Positions 3 to 33,238 of a stretch of DNA of 64,000 nucleotides are shown here, one piece after another. The notes under the pieces are model-generated. The model did no database searches, had not been told where the DNA came from, and saw nothing but the letters and a program-made list of their open reading frames with translations. The position numbers and the translations under genes are program-made. The first letter of the stretch is position 1; each line of letters starts with the position of its first letter. The stretch comes from Monocercomonoides exilis PA203 (Eukaryota; Protista; Preaxostyla), in NCBI GenBank assembly GCA_001643675.2, contig LSRY02000047.1, positions 124,001 to 188,000 on the forward strand, written 5' to 3'.

Positions 3-3000
3 TTCGACGAGTTTTTGAAGCGAACAGTGGATCTTTCAGTCATTTCAGCACCCGAACACGATGCTGGTGTGAATCAACTGCCTGGTCAGTTACCGACTTT
101 GTTTGACTTCTATTTCGATGTTGAGAAGAGAGCGTGGAAGGCGTGGGAGACACGTGTGACTCCGTATGAGCCTCCGCCTGATCGACTGTTCTGCAACATT
201 CTTGTTCCCACCGTGGATACAGTCAGACACATTGCTATTCTGTCGCTTCTTGTGGAACAGAAGGTGCCTGTGCTGTTCATTGGAGAGTCTGGAACAGCGA
301 AGACAGTGACCATTCAGAACTACCTCCGCTCACTGAACCCAGAAAGCACTGCATCGTTGAATATCAACTTCTCAAATCGCACAAACTCTCTCATTCTGCA
401 GCGTACACTCGATGACAACTTGGACAGACCATTGATGGGAGTGATTCGCCCACGTGCAGGGAAGAAGATGATTGTGTTTGCAGATGACATCAACATGCCT
501 CAGATGGACAACGAAGAGACACAACAGCCAATCGCACTGCTGAAGTTCCTGTTCGACCGCGGCGGGTTATACGGTCGCTCATCTGCTGATTTGTCATTCA
601 GAAAGTATGCAGACATCCAGTTTGTGTGTGCGATGGGTCCACCTGGTGGAGGAAGGCACCCGACCGATGTGCGTTTCACTTCAAAGTTCTCAATCTTCAA
701 TCTTCCTTTCCCAACTGTCTCTTCTCTTAAACGCATCTACGAATCTATCCTGAACCACCACTTCGAGCCATTCAGTCAGGAGATTAGACAGGCGGTGCCT
801 GTGTTGGTGGAGAACACCCTCATCCTCTACTTCACCGTCACCAACCAGCTCCCTGCCACTCCAAAGAAGTTCCACTACATCTTCAATCTTCGCGACTTGT
901 CTCGTGTGACTGAAGGGCTCACCCTCTCCACACCTGGCAAGTTCCCTTCGCTTCAGACAGTGCTGCGCCTGTGGTGCCACGAAATCCTGCGTGTCTTCCA
1001 GGACAGGCTGATCGACTACAACGACCGCGAACTTGTCAGAACAAAGATGAGAGAGCTGGTCACTCAATCGTGGCCAGAACTGGCTGAAAACGCATATTCC
1101 GAGCCACTTCTGTTCGGATCATACAAAAAGGCGAATCTTTCTGTGGGAGATCCAATCCCAGGCGAGCTGGATGAGAAGGAGAAGGAGGCAGAAGCAGCAG
1201 GCGGAGCATCAGCATCGTCGTCTGCAAGTGATGCTGGAGACGATCCGAAGGAGTATGAAGATCTGGAGAACTTTGATGCAATCAAGCCAGTTGTGGAAGA
1301 GTGCTTAGAGACATACAACGAGACGAGGTTGAGAATGAATCTTGTGATGTTTGCAGATGCACTGCAGCATCTGGCGCGTATCCACAGAATCATCCGAATG
1401 TGCCGAGGAAACGCTCTGCTTATCGGCTACGGAGGGTTCGGTAAGCAGTCGCTGACGAAGCTGGCGACGTTCATCGCTGGCTACAGCCTATTCCAGATCA
1501 CTTTGTCAAGAGGATATGGAGATGAGGCGTTCAGACAGGATCTGAAGAAGCTGTATCAGATGCTTGGTGTGCAGAATAAAGAAGTGGTGTTCCTGTTTAC
1601 TGATGCGCATGTGGTGAACTCGTCGTTCTTGGAGTACATCAACTCGATGCTCACGTCAGGAATGGTGCCAGCGCTGTATGCCGAAGACGAGAAGGATGCG
1701 ATCATCCGCGAGCTGAGTGAGGAGATGACGCGATTCGGTTTGTTCTCACGAGATGAGTGTTGGAACCACTTTGTGAACAAGTGCAGAAACAACCTGCACA
1801 TTGTGCTGTGTATGTCGCCTGCGGGTGACACTCTGCGTATTCGGTGCAGAAACTTCCCAGGGCTTGTCAGCAACACGTGCATCGACTGGTTCGAGTCGTG
1901 GTCTGACGATGCGCTTATCCCCGTGGCGAATGTGTTCCTGGCAGATGAGGATCTGCCTGACGAGCATCATGAGAACATCATCCTGCACATGGTGAGTGTG
2001 CATAAATCGATGAGCAAGTTCAACCAGGACTTCTTCAACAAGATGCGGAGACACAACTACGTCACGCCGAAGAACTATCTGGACTACATCAACAATTACA
2101 AGAAGCTTTTGAGAGAGAACAGGAAGAAGTTTGATGAGCAGGCAGAGCATCTGCAACAGGGTGTGGAGAGATTGAAGGCGGCAGCAGTGGAAGTGGACGA
2201 GATGAACGAGAAGCTGCGGGAGCAGAAGAAAGTGGTTGATGAGCAGGCACGTGCCTGTGATGAACTTGTGCAGCAGATTGAGCTGCGGACGGCAGAAGTG
2301 AAGAAGAAGAGCGAAGATGTCGAGAAGCGCAAGAAGGAGCTGTGGGAAGAGCAGGAGAACATTGTGGTTGACAAGCAAGAAGCCGAACGAGAACTGGCAG
2401 AAGCAGAACCTGCTTTGAGAGCAGCAGCACAGGCACTGAAGTTCCTCGAAGACAACAAGGACTCTATCAACGAAATGAGGGCATACAACATCCCTCCGAA
2501 GGCTGTGGAGCAGGTGTGCGAGTGTGTGGGCATCCTTCTGGGAGAGTCTGATCTGTCATGGGAGTCCACCCGTCTCATGCTGCGTAAGCCAGACTTCCTT
2601 GATCGTTTGCTGAACTACCCGAAAGAACAGCTGCTGAAGAAGGAGTCGATCATGGCGCGTGTGAAGCCACGCATGAAAGGACAAGACCCAGGAAAAGTCA
2701 AAGCCAGCATCAGTAAAGCAGCTGGTTCCATTATGGAGTGGGTGTTTGCCATTGACGCGTGGTACGACAAAGCGAAAGTGGTGCAGCCGAAGAAAGACAG
2801 AGTGGAAGCAGCAGAGGCGAGGCTGAGACAATCTCAACTTGATCTGGAAAAAGCAGAGCAAGAAATTGAGGCACTCACAAAGGAGTTGACATTATTGGAT
2901 CAAGCACTTCAGCAAAAGAGACAAGAACAGGCAGAGCTGAGGACGAAACTGGCAACGATGGAGCGACAGCTGAATGCGGCGAAGCGGCTGATTGCTGCGT

Positions 3001-6000
3001 TGGGAACAGAAAATGTGCGCTGGAACAGACAGGCAAGAGAACTGGCAGAGAGGAAGAAGCTGCTCATTGGAGATTGCCTGCTGACTGCAGCGTTTCTGTC
3101 ATATTGTGGTGCTTTCTCACACGACTTCAGAGACGAAATGGTGTACGGGCTGTGGGAAAAGGACATCCGAGACAACAAAATCCCTCTTTCCAATCCATTC
3201 CATGTAGAGACACTGCTGACTGACGATGTGGAGATCTCAAAATGGAGAAGTGAATCTCTTCCAGGAGATGAGCTGTCCATCCAGAACGGTATATTAACCA
3301 CACGCTCGTCCCGCTTCCCGCTCTGCATCGATCCACAAGAGCAGGCTGTGAAGTGGATCCGGAAGCGCGAGGCAGGCAACGAGCTGATTCGCACGTCATT
3401 CACAAGCGATTTCTTGCCACAGCTGCGCCGGGCGATCATGTTTGGCAGGCCCATCCTGTTTGAGAATGTGGAGGAGAACATAGACACCATCCTCGACCCA
3501 GTGCTTGAGAAGAACATTTTAAGAACTGGAGGTTCAGCAGACGGCACAGGAGGCAGGAGATACATCATTCTGGGTGATCAGGAGGTTGACTGGAGCCCGG
3601 ACTTCAGGCTGTACATGACGACAAAGATGTCAAATCCACACTACACACCAGAGATTGCAGGAAAGACGATGATTGTGAACTTCAATGTGACACCACAGGG
3701 GTTGGAGGAGCAGCTGCTGAATGCAGTTGTGGGCATTGAGCGTGAAGATCTAGAAAAGGGACATGAAGAGCTGATTCAAACGATGAGTGAGCTGAGAGAG
3801 TCGCTGAAGGAGACTGAAGACACTCTTTTGCGTGAGTTCACAGCAGTGAAAGGTTCTCTGTTAGACAATGAGGAGCTCATCTGTCTGTTGGAGAAGACGA
3901 AGACGATCCACCAGGAAGTGACAGACAAGCTGGAGCGGGCGAAGGAGAACGAGAAGCAGATTGAGGAGGCACGGTCGCGCTACCGCCCAGCAGCCACACG
4001 AGGCAGCACACTCTTCTTTGTGATGAGCTCACTGTCTTCTGTGTCTTCTATGTGTGAGTATTCGCTCGATGCATTCAGAGACATCTTCATCCAGTCTATC
4101 AAGCAGGCACAGCGCAGCGACGATCTGTTCAAAAGACTGAAGAACATCATCGAGGTGGTTACAGACAACGTATTCAACTACGTCTGCCTCGGTCTATTTG
4201 AGCGGTTCCGGCTGATGTTTGCGTTCCAAATGACACTCAAAATCATGGAGCAGCAGAACATGACACGCGACAGCCAGTTGCACTTCTTCCTGAAAGGATC
4301 ACTTTCCCTCGAAAAGGCAGCAGAGCCGAGACCAGCGGGGACAGAAGACTTCCTCACAGAAGACGGATGGAAGGATGCGATTGAGCTGGTAAAGGCCGAT
4401 CCTGAGCGGTTTGGCAACTTTATTGATCTTCTGAGGGCAGATCCGGATTCGTGGAGAGAATGGGCACAGAACGAAAGACCTGAAGAGGTGATGCCACCGA
4501 TGCGCCCGTTCAATGCAAAGAGCAGCAGTGCAGATGAAGAAGAAAAGGGAGAAGGAGAAGAAAAAGGAGAAGAAGACGGAGAAAACAGGAAAGAAGAGAA
4601 AGCACCAGCAAATGAGAAAGACAACAAACGGAAAGCAAGAAAAGACGAAGCAGAAGAAGACGATGAGGCTGGTGCATCTTCAGCCTCTGCCTCCTCATCC
4701 TCCTCTGCCTCAAACGCCAAAGCTGGTTCAGGTGCTGAAGGAGAGGTCTCTGATCCTGGGCGCATCTGCGGGTCGATTGATCCGAATGCGTTATCTGAGT
4801 TAGAGCGCCTGTGTCTTCTGCGTATCTTCCGCGTCGACCGCATCACCGCTGGTGTGAACCACTTTGTGGTGGCGATGATGGGAGCGAAGTATGTCAACTA
4901 CCCGATCCTGCTGTACGACGACATCTACAACCGCTCCACCGCCTTTTCGCCGGTCGTGTTCATCATCTCGCCTGGGTCTGACCCAGCGACTGATGTGATT
5001 GCACTGGGAGAGCGGAAGGGCTTTATGCAGCCGCTGCGTCTGCGGAACATTTCTCTTGGGCAGAACATGGAGCCTCTGGCTGAACAGGCGATCGACCAGG
5101 CTGTGACTCGTGGGCAGTGGGTGCTGCTGCAGAACTGTCATCTGCTGCCGAAGTGGCTGAAGATCCTCGAGAAGAAGCTCGAGCAGATCGCCGAGCGCGA
5201 TGCAGACTCAGTCGACCCAGAGTTCCGTCTTTTCCTCACCTCTGAGCCCACCGACCAGTTCCCCATGGGCATCCTCCAGCGCTCGCTGAAGGTTGTCACA
5301 GAGCCTCCGAACTCGCTCAGAATGAACATGCTCACCACATACGGCAAGATCGGCAGAGAAGAGCTGGAGCGGTCGAACCACCCGGCATACAGGCCGCTTA
5401 TCTATGTGCTTGCTTTCTTCCACGCTGTTGTGCAGGAGCGAGGCAAATATGGGAAGTTGGGGTGGAATGTGCTGTACGACTTCAACGAGTCTGATTTCAG
5501 AGTGTCGCTTGATCTGATTGCCACTTATCTGAACAAAGCATGCGATGCAGCATTGGAAGCAGCTGGCGCTGGCGGCTCGTCCACTCAGAGCGGAGCAGCG
5601 AATGTGGCACTTGCAGAAGCAGAGGAAGGAAATGCAGAGGCGAATGACGACGACGAAGAGAAGCAGATCATTGCGGGTGTTGCTGAAATCAATCCAGACT
5701 TCTCAGGAGAAGACGATGATGAGGACGAGGAAGAGGATGAAATGGAGCGTGGAGAAGGAGGAAAAAGCAGCAGCACAAAAGAAAAGGAACAAACAGACGA
5801 TTCAGGAGAAGAAACAGCAGAAGAGTCTTCTTCAGCATCGGCTTCAGCTTCAGCTTCTTCTTCATTCACATCATCCTCTTCATCTGAAGCCGAGTCTGAG
5901 TCTTCTACAGGCGCCGCTCCACCGCCAGAGGTGAACTTCACCACAGCGCCTGTTCCATGGGCTTCGCTGAGGTATCTTGTGGGAGAAGTGATGTACGGTG

Positions 6001-27505: not shown

Positions 27506-27718
27506 GGTATAATTTGTCAAATGGGATGATATTTTTTGCTTTATAAATATTGTTCCATTCAGAATTTTGGAACAAATTTCTCATTTTTTAAATTTTTTCT
27601 AAACATTTTTGCATGAGAATGTTTGACTTGTTATGATATGAAAGGAGAAAAAGTTCGGAACAAATCGTTGTTTTTTTCACAAAAGCAAGAATTTTGTCCC
27701 AATTTTCATCAAATTACC
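27506..27718. mobile_element. Degenerate MITE-like inverted repeat
   Basis: Left arm ggtataatttg..aaatgggat..tttgcttt..ttgttcc versus reverse complement of the right arm ggtaatttg..aattgggac..cttgcttt..ttgttcc; many mismatches. Confidence 0.4.
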
Positions 27719-28073
27719 TTTATTTGAATTATTCAATAGACCTGTGCGACAAGTGGCAATTTTTGCCAGTAACTGACACAGGTGACCGACAGGACAATTT
27801 TTCATGATCATAACCAAAAAAATTTTTGAATTTTCATAATTTGGAATTTTTTCAAATCGAAATAAAAAATTTATAAAACATTTATTCTTTCTAATAATCG
27901 AAAAAATGTGGCATTATCGCGTTATATCGGACAACGAAAATTCCAGTTTTTTTGCGTCTGATATTCCTAAATATGTATTTTATTCATTTTAAAAATAGTT
28001 TTAAGGCGCGGAAAACGTTTTGTCAAAAATAAAAAATGTTTCTAAAATATTACAATTTTGGGTCAATTCCTGA

Positions 28074-28326
28074 TTAGGGTTATCGAAAAAAAGATAAAGT
28101 CGAAATAAAGCTTTTTCAAGACAAATGAAAATTTCAGTTTTTATTGAATTTATGCATTTATTAATGAAGAGTGTTCACTAGAACAGTTTACGGAATAGTT
28201 TAATAAACCTATTGTTTTTTTTTAGGTTTTCATTTCTCTATCAATTTTCGTTTCAACTGTGGTTTTAGGGTAAGAGTTTGCATTTGAATCAACTTTTTAG
28301 GGTTTTGTTTTGTTTTAGGGTTAGGG
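28074..28326 (+). repeat. Cluster of interstitial TTAGGG telomere-type hexamers
   Basis: TTAGGG at 28074, 28265, 28297, 28315 and 28321 (last two in tandem), all on the same strand. Confidence 0.7.
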
Positions 28327-28367
28327 TTAAAAATAAAAGATAATTTTTGAATAGAATCTTTCAGTGT

Positions 28368-28449
28368 GAAGCACTGATTGTATGGTTAGGATTTTTCTTG
28401 AATTATTGGATTGGTCTATGGTTCGAATCCCGCCAAGAACTTTTTTTTT
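28368..28449 (+). pseudogene. tRNA-derived pseudo-element (A-box-like, B-box, T-run)
   Basis: D-loop-like gtatggttaggat (28380-28392), perfect B-box GGTTCGAATCC (28420-28430) and T9 at 28441. Acceptor, anticodon and T stems do not pair, so it is not a functional tRNA. Confidence 0.55.
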
Positions 28450-30349
28450 ATTTTATATTTTTTTATTTTTTTTATCATAACATAAGTTTAATTATTCCAA
28501 AAAGTGATGGCTTGGGATTGTCCAATTGTGCAGATTTATCAGAACGAGAGGGTGAATAATAACTGTGTCAATTTTTACGATTTTTCGACTTTTTTCATTG
28601 ACCAACAATCATTTTTTTTTTGAAAAAAGAAAAATTAAAAACCTGATTTTGACTAACTTCCGCGCTATTTGAATCACCAAAACATGAATATATTTGATTG
28701 ATAAACATTTCTATCAACAGTAAAATCAATTTTTCGATGTCCGATATAACGCGAATTTGCCAAAAATGTCACATATTCCAACAAAATTTTAAATTTATTG
28801 TGAAAAATAGGATGAAATATTTGTCTCAATAAAAAATAAAGAAAGAAAAAAAGAAAATTATATAGAAAGTCAAAAAAAAAAAAATCCATTGTGTATTTTT
28901 TATTATCAAACAAGATTAAGAAATTGATAAAGAAATATAATTGATTTTTTGTATTTGTTTTTTGAAAAATTAATTCATCAAATTTACCAAAATATTTTTT
29001 TAACTGACAAGATCTGTGAAACATGGATTTTTTTATGCCACTGGAAGTCACTTCTGTCACTGACAGTCAGTCTTCTCAATGAAATAAACAAGCTCGAAAA
29101 GGAAACAAAATAACAAAATAAGTTGTTGAGCATCTGAAATGTGTATAATTTCATTTTACTATCTGTTGCAACCATAAATTTTCATTTGATATTTGATTAT
29201 CTTTTTTTTTAATGAAAGAGCCATATATATAAAAACAAAAAAGATTTGAAGATTGCTCTTTGATTGACCGTTTCAATTAATGATCGTTTGAAGATGGATA
29301 TATTTGTTAATATCATTATTTTATTATCTTTGTTTATTTGACTCGTTTTTCAATTTCCATAACATGATGTGACTTCATCCCTTGAATATGTGTAGTTAAT
29401 TTCATATTGAAACCATATCTTTCAAAGTTTTTGAATTATCGTTCCGAATCTTTTGCAAAATAAAGGATTAAATTGAATTTTATTTATATTTAAGTGGCAA
29501 GCAATGTCATTTCCTTTATGGAGCATTAAAACAGGTGATGAAAATAAACGTCTGTGCAATCATATAGACAAAGGAATTGATCCAATTATCTCAAATGTTA
29601 CAAGCTGACCGACTGAATAGTATTTGCTGAGCAATTATTGCTGGATATATTTCATTGAATGTGGAACATCTATGAAGTTTGTATTATTATGTCATTATTT
29701 CATTAGCCTTGGAAAGATCATGACTTCATTTCGAAATCTCTTGCAAATTGATTAAAAAACCAACTTTTCATTCAACTGTTCATTATTCTTCACTGATGTT
29801 GTATGATTTCTTGGAGCTTAGTCATTTTCATTTTATTTTGAACCATATTCGAAAAAAAGTCTTCTTTCTCTTATCTCTCCATCATAAAGTTATTAAAAAT
29901 CCAATATTTGTTTGAAAATTGTTGAAAACATCTGAATTGAGCAAAAAAACTGAACACAGCAGATTCATTGCAGTAACGTCGAATGAATTGATACAAAAAG
30001 AAATGAGAGGCAGGGTGGAGCGATGAAAGAAAGACGAAGGATTTTGAATGTGCTATTTTTTCATTAGAATGAAGCAACAAGTTTCTTGTGAAAAGTTTTT
30101 TGAAGAAGAAAAGAAAGTTGCGGAATAAGCGTTGATTCTGTTTTTTTCCTTGAAATCATATAGTCAAGTTTCATTTCGTTTTTCTTTTGAAAAAATTATT
30201 AAAAATAAAAGAACTTAATAAAATCCTCAAGTGTTTGTTTTTCTTTTTTGCGAAATGAATAAAAAATAACAAAAAGATAGAATAATGGAGATTCAATTTT
30301 CATTGATTAGAATTTGGCTTCACAATTACAAAATACTTAGAAATATCTA

Positions 30350-31570
30350 ATGATGAAATATCATAATATTTTTTGTTCGGGAAATCAAATATCCCTGTTA
30401 GAAAATGAAAAATTTTACGAACACTTCTTCTTCCAGATTTTCAAACATCTTCCTTTTTATTGCCTTTCTTTCCTCTTCATCAGCTTCACCATCTGTTTTT
30501 TCTTTTAATCTTTTTGAAGCACACAAAAAGAAACGAAAGCAATTCCATATGATTTTATCTTCCAAAGTTTATTGCTTCATTTCATCCAAATCAACATTAA
30601 TGTTTCCTAATCTTAACAGTGCAAACCCTTACACATTTCATATGTGATACAATTCTTAATGAATTGAAGCATTTGTTGCGATTTTCTTTGAAACCGTCTC
30701 TTGATGCTCGAAATAACTGAACAATTCTGCTACCAAGGCAAACAAATACTTCATTTCTTAAATTGTTTGATAATTTGTTTTCTTTCATCACAAAGAACTA
30801 TCTCTTGATAAAAAACATTTATTTCCCTTCTTTTTCTCCTCTTCTTTCTTCTATTCTCTTCCAATCAATATTTTTTATCAGACCTTTCAGCTCCTTTATT
30901 GCCTCTCTGATAAAATGCATTTCTTTCACAATTGCTCATTCCAAAGATCGATCGTTGAATATTTGATCAATCAAAAACTCCCAAGAAGATTTATATGCAA
31001 GTTGTTAAAGATTGTGATGTTCCTGGTGATATCCTAAAATCGCTTTGTTCTCATTCAAATGCAGTTCTCTTTTCATTTTATTAAAAAAAAGAAGTCGAAA
31101 ATAAAACATTATCAAAAATGAAAAAGAAATGTTCAAACATCAAATAAGCTGTAGTTGCAAAACAAAAGCAAAGCCATTTCCACTTCTTTTTGAATTTCAT
31201 TTCTTTTTCCTTCAAGGCAACTGTCAGAAGGCAAGGCACATATATTGAAAGAGGTTCGTTTGGAGCGCATTCAATACACAACTTCATATAGAGTTCGTAA
31301 AGATCAACAAATAGCTTGTAACACTTTCCATCTTTCTTCTCTTTCATCGATAGTTATCTTCTCAGATCTTTTATGTAACGAGGACTCTTCAAAGCCATTT
31401 ATCTTTGAATCTTTCAGTGAAGCTCAATATTTAATTGTTTCAAAAAACAGAGTGATATTTTCTATTGATATAATTTTCTTTGATTATTTTGTGAATTTTG
31501 ATGAATAGTTCTTCCGCAACAACGGAATAAAATTCATCTTTGCACATTTCTTCAATTTTCTTTTTTAATA
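30350..31570 (-). pseudogene. Decayed copy of an expanded lineage-specific helical hypothetical protein family
   Basis: Collinear fragments broken by stops and frameshifts: KIEEMCKDEFYSVVAEELFIKIHKII, LSIYVPCLLTVALK, YHQEHHNL*QLAYKSSWEFLI, HFIREAIKEL, IVQLFRASRD, KRLKEK..KRKMFENLEEE. These resemble a large family of Monocercomonoides hypothetical proteins as I recall it; not checked. Confidence 0.7.
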
Positions 31571-32035
31571 TAATCTTGTATCAATGTTTCAGACCAGTAA
31601 ACTTTTTCTTTAAAATTATAATTGAAAAAAAAATTCATTATTCATGAATTCGAGTGAAATAATAAATGCATACCACCGTATCTTCTTTATGCGTGAATTG
31701 TATGCATTTTTTTTTTGGAGGTTTTATTGAGAAAACAACACAATTGAATCATATTAACTGAATTTGCACAAGCTTGGATAAAATAAATTGAAGTTAAATA
31801 GAATCCTGATTTGTTCATGAAAGCATAAGTTTTCACGCAACACACAAAAGCACTAAGATGATGAACAACGCATTAAGAAGAAAAATATGTTTTGTTTATT
31901 CATTTATATTTTTATGGATCATATGATCAAATGAAGGAAACAGTTCAAAAGTTTTCAACAATGAAAAATAAAAGTCTAAAAATAAAGCTGAGGGAATTTT
32001 GTTACTAAAAATTCAAAAAAATTAATTAATTTCTT

Positions 32036-32037
<2 letters not shown>

Positions 32038-32097
<60 letters not shown>
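32038..32097 (+). repeat. Poly(T) tract of 60 nt inside the right end of the TIR element
   Basis: Read directly; the length may be affected by homopolymer sequencing error. Confidence 0.9.
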
Positions 32098-32099
<2 letters not shown>

Positions 32100-32155
32100 T
32101 GACCGACAGCAACAAAAAATGGCATGTCGTGTCGCATAGGTCTAATTATTCAAAT

Positions 32156-32218
32156 TAGACCTGTGCGACACGACAAGCAAATTTTTGGTTCTGCCGGTCA
32201 CTTTAAAAAAAAAAAAAA
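32156..32218. mobile_element. Second, inverted copy of the same transposon end (orphan terminus)
   Basis: TAGACCTGTGCGACACGACA...CCGGTCACT plus A14, mirroring 32098-32144 plus the T-tract, with 11 bp between them. No partner end found downstream in the window. Confidence 0.7.
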
Positions 32219-33238
32219 GTTCTTATTTTTTTATTTTAAAAAACAATTTTTTTTTCTTTTTTTTTTTTTTTTATCATATGGATAATCCTTTTTAAAATCA
32301 AACTTTCGTTCGAGTTTTGATCAAAGCTTTTTTCTTAAAGGGATTTTGAAAAATTGAAATATTGCAAACAAAAAAGGATTATTGTATTCAGACCATTTTT
32401 CATCAAAAAACTCTTTAAAATTGAATGCGAGCTTTTTATTTATCAATTTGCTGTGAAATTCTTTTCTGTCACGAAAAATGATCATCTTCATTTTTAATCT
32501 TTTGTTTAATAGTTTTTGACAAATTGTCACAATAACAATTAAAAGACAATTTCAGCTTTGATTATTTGAATTTTGGTGTCATATGCAATTGAAAGTACTC
32601 CACATCTCTTTTCATTAATAAAAATGCATTTCGAACAAATATTAATGAAAGTTTTGATGTGAGCAAAAAAAACTATTATTTTATTTTCAGTAATGATCAA
32701 TAGGTTTCAATGTTTCAAAAGCATTAATATAATCGCAGCATTGCTTCTTTTTTGCTTTTGATTCATGTGTTTAACGATAAAAGTGAGAACCACTGAAGTG
32801 ATCTTTTGCTGTCAATTTTTTATTTTAATAAAACGAAAGAATTAATCAATATATAATTCGTTGGAGTGAAAGTGAATTGTTAGTGTTATGCAATTTTTAA
32901 GAAATAAAAAGGGTGTATGATTTATATTTTGGTATTCATTCATGAAAAGTTTCACTTGTTTTTTGTTTTATTTGAATGGAATTATGAATTATTAATTATT
33001 TATTGATAAAAATTTTTCTTGTTTTCCAGTGGAGATATTAGAACGCATGAACATATATGATTATTATTGAATCCAAATTTTTAAAGATGAGAAACTTCGA
33101 TTGGAAAATTCACTTTGAATTTTGAAAAATAGATGGTGATAAGCAATATTGAATTTTTCTTAGAAATATTTCAAAAATTCATCTCATTTATTGACTTTTC
33201 TTTCGAATGAATTTCATTCAACAATTGAATAAAAATTA

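Follow-up and report, generated by a model that had tools for sequence, protein, structure and literature searches.

To which class of transposon does an element belong that carries a host gene between short inverted ends, has no transposase of its own and is flanked on both sides by an identical 9-mer? The question is raised by a 4.4-kb element in a stretch of 64,000 nucleotides from the oxymonad Monocercomonoides exilis PA203 (contig LSRY02000047.1, positions 124,001 to 188,000), here called the window; coordinates given without a contig name are window positions. A first, sequence-only reading had hesitated between hAT, suggested by the ends, and Mutator, suggested by the 9-bp duplication and the captured gene, and had leaned towards a possibly unclassified family. 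We have delimited the element as window 27737-32144 (4,408 bp), and it is very probably an old, immobile, transposase-less member of an M. exilis hAT family with roughly 50 copies.

Ends, target-site duplications and transposase of the family

The genome searched was the M. exilis assembly of 82.3 Mb in 101 contigs, where the 14-bp end of the element, allowing one mismatch at most, gave 108 matches versus 24 for a reversed control. Most of these matches form convergent pairs 3.0–3.9 kb apart, and such pairs are found all over the genome, the ends not being confined to the window copy. We fetched 33 end pairs with their flanks, and the tally of target-site duplications covers 34 pairs. The duplication characteristic of the family is 8 bp long and appears in 29/34 pairs, 26 of them with an exact repeat and three with one mismatch. 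The window copy itself differs, with flanks matching exactly over 9 bp, as they do in one other copy (L046); one further pair (L054) shows 9 bp with one mismatch (8/9), and two pairs have no duplication. The flanking repeats are all different between copies and are therefore genuine target-site duplications, not element sequence, as they would be if the same 9-mer flanked every copy.

The transposase evidence comes from longer copies with the same ends. A genome scan with PF05699 (hAT dimerisation) gave a match at C48:126550-126756 (29.4 bits, cut-off 21.4), within the pair of ends at C48:121625-129833 (L051, 8,209 bp, duplication AAAACATT) and in a gene broken by stops. An open reading frame (ORF) of 372 amino acids (aa) from this copy has >100 genome homologues. 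The closest ones lie inside or beside same-ended copies (L055, 67%; C32:111103, 58%; also C37, 78%), and all of these carry stops. The 372-aa piece finds no match by sequence in Pfam or PDB, and the classification therefore goes through the PF05699 match and through an intact 918-aa ORF, to residues 323-626 of which it is 35% identical (E = 7e-52). For its part, the 918-aa ORF has a match to PF05699 as well as one to the C-terminal part of the Hermes transposase, and the TRW motif, which we take to be a motif of hAT transposases, is visible in the alignment of the two. Because of the 8-bp duplications, the short TAG-initial ends and the decayed hAT transposase in same-ended copies, we assign the family on sequence grounds to the hAT superfamily. 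Of the two sides of the earlier guess, the hAT one has stood, and the Mutator (or unclassified) one has not, given the 8-bp duplications in most pairs and the hAT transposase in L051 and L055, which are the transposase-bearing copies that the sequence-only reading had proposed to look for, both of them decayed.

Two other long copies were considered as autonomous and rejected, since their long ORFs belong to nested foreign insertions: a 545-aa ORF without family in L053, and a tyrosine-recombinase ORF in L052. The latter (C47:1812366-1821095) holds its 1,145-aa ORF at 1383-4817 on the minus strand (PF00589, E = 4.7e-7), nested in an 8.3-kb hAT copy, and the insert is possibly of the Crypton or DIRS kind.

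The family ends are 14-15 bp long, TAGACCTGTGCGAC(A), and are conserved and asymmetric: the left-end type (L-end) reads ...GCGACAAGTGGCAAATTTTGTCAGTAACTGACACAGGTGACCGACAGG and the right-end type (R-end) ...GCGACACGACATGCAATTTTTTGTTGCTGTCGGTCAC, with T and then a run of A after it. Over the terminal 150 bp the motif CGACA has a density of 15.7 per kb, versus 0.6 per kb in the interiors (~26-fold). Copy lengths include 2,875 bp (L034) and 3,452 bp (L039), and most copies have diverged by 5-30%. Two of them, L059 (C19:201654-204790) and L060 (C24:955025-958158), are 99.87% identical over 3,137 bp, sit on different contigs and have different 8-bp duplications, which points to very recent movement of part of the family.

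There are also some unusual arrangements among the relatives. One is a 6.3-kb composite (L054, C38:434789-441536), made of a complete 3.3-kb copy and, immediately adjoining it, a second copy without its left 500 bp; both parts seem to have moved as one unit because a near-identical 9-mer flanks the outer ends. Another is a 496-bp element with related ends TAGACCTCTGCGACATGACAAG (L050, C25:2418921-2419416), which has no direct duplication and whose flanks are mutually inverted (tatcatcaaaaa / tttttgatgata). It may represent a sister hAT family, or its inverted repeat may extend further out.

The window copy, its cargo and its neighbours

The features of the window copy and its immediate surroundings are as follows.

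27728-27736, directly outside the left end: left target-site duplication ATTATTCAA, 9 bp
27737-27751, plus strand: left terminal inverted repeat TAGACCTGTGCGACA, from the end-motif search
27737-27909, plus strand: left subterminal region, L-end type ...GCGACAAGTGGCAA..., aligning to family-copy positions 1-175
27902-27909 (left) and 28762-28769 (right): 8-bp duplication AAAAATGT of the nested element
27910-28761: nested non-autonomous DNA transposon, 852 bp, ends GGCAwwwTCGCGTTATATCGGACA
28762-30418, minus strand: interior 3' of the cargo, common to the family, no coding signal, probably captured 3' flank
30419-31335, minus strand: cargo pseudogene, residues 120-426 of a 459-aa host paralogue, 39-58% identity
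32038-32097, plus strand: poly-T tract of ~60 nt adjoining the right end, a family trait, being the (A)n after GGTCAC-T in the R-end consensus
32099-32144, plus strand: right subterminal region and terminal inverted repeat, R-end type, with GTGACCGACAG at 32099-32109
32145-32153, directly outside the right end: right target-site duplication ATTATTCAA
32156-32201/32219, plus strand: lone R-end piece, inverted, from the element's own family, 46-64 bp, starting 11 bp past the right end

The right end (32130-32144) reads TAGACCTATGCGACA on the reverse strand and matches the left one at 14/15 positions, with a single mismatch. With up to two mismatches the end motif has three matches in the window versus 0.12 expected. 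The 9-mer ATTATTCAA itself is common there (4 matches vs 2.3 expected), and its weight lies in its placement against both ends, not in rarity. The left subterminal region holds GTGACCGACAG at 27782-27792 together with recurring CGACA motifs; GTGACCGACAG, which is part of both the left-end and the right-end consensus of the family, lies 46 bp inside the left end (27782) and 36 bp inside the right one (32099). The element has no long ORF, the longest one in its ORF list being 130 aa, and it resembles the transposase-bearing L051 only in its ends and cargo. Most of the initial description is thus borne out, namely the 15-bp inverted repeats, the identical 9-mer just outside both of them, the subterminal motif at both ends, the lack of a transposase ORF (no frame exceeds 130 codons) and, overall, a non-autonomous gene-carrying DNA transposon with inverted ends and a target-site duplication.

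Compared with the ~3.5-kb copies, the window copy aligns over element positions 1-173, 1029-2773 and 3083-4408 at 65-76% identity, that is, along its length save for the 852-bp insert, and its interior is therefore family sequence and not private cargo. Its nearest sibling (C14:247659-250711) is 85% identical and, its right end being decayed, gives no duplication length.

The decayed host-family gene that had been noticed inside the element is indeed there, running on the minus strand from 31335 to 30419 with at least five in-frame stops as well as frame changes. It is not specific to this copy but common to the whole ~3.5-kb subfamily, where the cargo covers residues 16-459 of the 459-aa host paralogue, antisense to the left-to-right direction. 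Parts of the same gene are held by L051 (residues 16-262) and L055 (residues 227-382), and capture therefore most likely took place in an autonomous ancestor. The element interior is collinear with host loci, spacers included, and by this sequence comparison it appears to derive from a host gene existing outside transposons. The host family is very large (>1,000 members), a genome search with a 179-codon exon of the copy L040 giving 1,665 first-look candidates, ~50% identical. Neither the cargo nor its host paralogues have a significant Pfam family. Language-model features of the host protein point to armadillo/HEAT repeats, and the AlphaFold model from the single sequence is all-helical and of low confidence (predicted local distance difference test score, pLDDT, 49.7), so that the predicted product is possibly an all-helical, armadillo-like protein.

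The sequence-only reading had also described a foldback with telomere and tRNA pieces in the left part of the element. The foldback and the telomere-like runs have turned out to be a discrete nested transposon of 852 bp, which breaks the family alignment between element positions 173 and 1029; the tRNA part did not hold, with no tRNA found in it by ARAGORN and no Rfam family. Within the body of this nested element lie TTAGGG-like runs as well as the B-box-like GGTTCGAATCC, after which comes poly-T. Its own family has ~15 copies in the genome (including L067-L075), with exact 8-bp duplications in 7/10 fetched copies and near-exact ones in two more, and relatives of 850 bp are 80-92% identical over the full length, TTAGGG-like runs included. 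Judging by these relatives, the telomere-like runs are a trait of the nested family. Among its genome relatives no autonomous partner was identified. The longest of them, L075 (C17:450110-453603), was tried as the autonomous parent and rejected, its DDE_1 ORF belonging to a pogo-like element nested within. This pogo-like element (~586-3137 of the locus) has ~35-bp ends starting with CAGTC, a TA duplication and a PF03184 DDE_1 match (E = 6.8e-16).

A third family end, absent from the first account of this DNA, begins at 32156, head to head with the right end of the element. Together the two form a 66-nt palindrome (32082-32218), 86% complementary around a 5-nt centre ATTCA, whose arms run 3 nt past the element ends. 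The fragment lies exactly between ...CAAAT and TTC..., without a duplication of its own, and resembles the family consensus (90-92% identity) more than it does the right end next to it. Most simply read, it is what is left of an older adjacent copy that has since been truncated.

Further out, both flanks consist of short dispersed repeats. The left one (27522-27706) has a unit of ~185 bp and 364 first-look candidates. The right one (32246-32360) has units of ~80-110 bp in inverted pairs ~130 bp apart, in an arrangement like that of miniature inverted-repeat transposable elements, and 272 candidates.

Weighing of the alternatives

Some points weigh against the hAT assignment and the history proposed for the window copy. 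The assembly yielded no intact transposase of this lineage, stops being present in all close relatives, and the Pfam and structure match covers only the C-terminal dimerisation region, the hAT catalytic core not being directly matched. The armadillo-like label of the host gene comes from language-model features and a low-confidence all-helical model. Moreover, the duplication of the window copy is 9 bp and not 8, and here a paralogous locus (L064, C80:1236955-1237313) that spans both flanks, without the element and without the end fragment, reads GAATTATTCAAAT once, an empty site which supports a real 9-bp duplication. The 9-bp repeat can go back to a staggered cut of, exceptionally, 9 bp, or to an 8-bp duplication with a 1-bp indel or homopolymer error; at the window junction the alternative would be 8 duplicated bp plus one extra A, and a wrong homopolymer length at the left junction could account for the additional base in the window copy and in L046 alike. 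Whether it is a minority product or stems from an indel of 1 bp or a fault in the assembly, a length of 9 bp does not define the class. A Mutator element (Pack-MULE, MULE standing for Mutator-like element), or an undescribed superfamily of inverted-end transposons with a 9-bp hallmark, can be given next to no credence: the exact 9-bp flanks of the window copy and L046 and the 8/9 match of L054 would fit it, and gene capture is best known from Pack-MULEs, but 8-bp duplications prevail (29/34 pairs), the sole transposase found between these ends is hAT-like, and the ends are short and TAG-initial with subterminal repeats as in hAT. A different explanation for the odd 9-bp junction is that the element and the neighbouring end fragment arose in one aberrant event, either alternative transposition using two right ends or fold-back break repair at the ATTCA centre. 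The palindrome with its arms reaching 3 nt beyond the element ends, the empty site lacking element and fragment alike and the missing target duplication of the fragment are all in line with it. On the other side, the arms are only 86% alike, the fragment is nearer to the family consensus than to the adjacent right end, L046 has a 9-bp duplication without any such neighbour, and local insertions of the same family are common for hAT, being significantly enriched in maize (PMC8903248); a truncated older neighbour would explain the arrangement. We consider a single event unlikely, if worth keeping in mind.

The cargo invites another interpretation, that it is an accessory gene of the element itself and that such elements seeded or expanded the host family of >1,000 members. 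In its favour, transposase-bearing copies also hold the gene, and 35% of the genome is unclassified repeat overlapping expanded gene families (PMC8767320). The numbers run the other way, with a few tens of element-borne copies versus 1,665 first-look host candidates. Besides, element-borne copies show only ~40-58% protein identity to host members and yet are collinear in DNA with each other, which points to one capture, and an exact 11-bp inverted-end pair with an exact 8-bp duplication was absent from 3/3 sampled host loci (a small sample, with exact matches demanded). An accessory gene of this kind is very improbable. A broader proposal, which we likewise hold to be very improbable, is that hAT capture of whole members of the giant orphan, armadillo-like gene families was a real driver of their expansion, that part of the 35% of unclassified repeats consists of genes spread by transposons, and that the transposase makes variable cuts of 8 or 9 bp.

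The history favoured here is that of a hAT family which took up a host gene once. By analogy with established hAT biology, a hAT transposase acting in trans would bind the 15-bp terminal inverted repeats and the CGACA-rich subterminal repeats, and the element would have been excised and reinserted across a staggered cut, normally of 8 bp. An autonomous ancestor would have picked up, in antisense, a near-whole host gene, all-helical and possibly armadillo-like; loss of the transposase region would then have produced the ~3.5-kb Pack-type gene-carrying form, which was amplified afterwards. The window copy belongs to an old branch, as its 85% identity to the nearest sibling suggests, with its cargo decayed to a pseudogene, and the unrelated 852-bp non-autonomous transposon inserted later in its left arm.

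Relation to known systems

Literature on the transposable elements of M. exilis gives genome-level totals only, and we found no published description of a hAT family for an oxymonad. The paper on the Oxford Nanopore (ONT) assembly puts DNA transposons at 4.5% and unclassified repeats at 35%, without describing individual families, the unclassified part amounting to 76% of the repeats (28.9 of 37.8 Mb; PMC8767320). To this genome the present analysis adds a hAT family with defined ends, a spectrum of duplication lengths, decayed autonomous copies and captured cargo, and shows that transposon gene capture, known in plants and fungi, extends to an amitochondriate metamonad. For annotation, such copies should be masked as transposons and not counted as members of expanded gene families. 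The accepted view of hAT function is unaltered by these findings.

With Pack-MULEs the window copy shares the general character of a gene-carrying non-autonomous DNA transposon and its 9-bp duplication, whereas MULEs have long ends (>=100 bp in plants), 9-11-bp duplications family-wide and a MuDR-type transposase, none of which is seen here. Classical hAT elements (Ac/Ds, hobo, Hermes, Tol2) are much closer, with the 8-bp duplication, TAG-initial asymmetric ends, short subterminal repeats and a transposase with a C-terminal hAT dimerisation region and TRW motif. They differ in that no intact autonomous copy of the M. exilis lineage was found in the assembly, in that its transposase is very divergent, with Pfam and PDB matches confined to the C-terminus, and in the target consensus nTnnnnAn, which is not evident here: of the 26 oriented duplications, 11 have A and 10 have T at position 2, and 12 have T and 8 have A at position 7, no more than an AT-rich genome would give by itself.

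The nearest counterparts are the Pack-TYPE hAT elements known in maize and rice (PMC8903248), with which the M. exilis family shares short inverted ends, an 8-bp duplication, a non-autonomous body made of host gene sequence and tens of copies. The differences are that the host is an oxymonad protist, that what is carried is a nearly complete gene from a huge orphan family instead of a single-copy housekeeping gene, and that 9 bp are found in 2-3 of the 32 pairs with a duplication. A further parallel comes from the fungi Pseudocercospora and Pyrenophora, in which hAT elements took up histone H3 and multiplied it and in which, as here, a transposase-bearing copy also holds the captured gene (PMC6710886). 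The window element is accordingly a Pack-type hAT, an element of a known kind and not of a new class.

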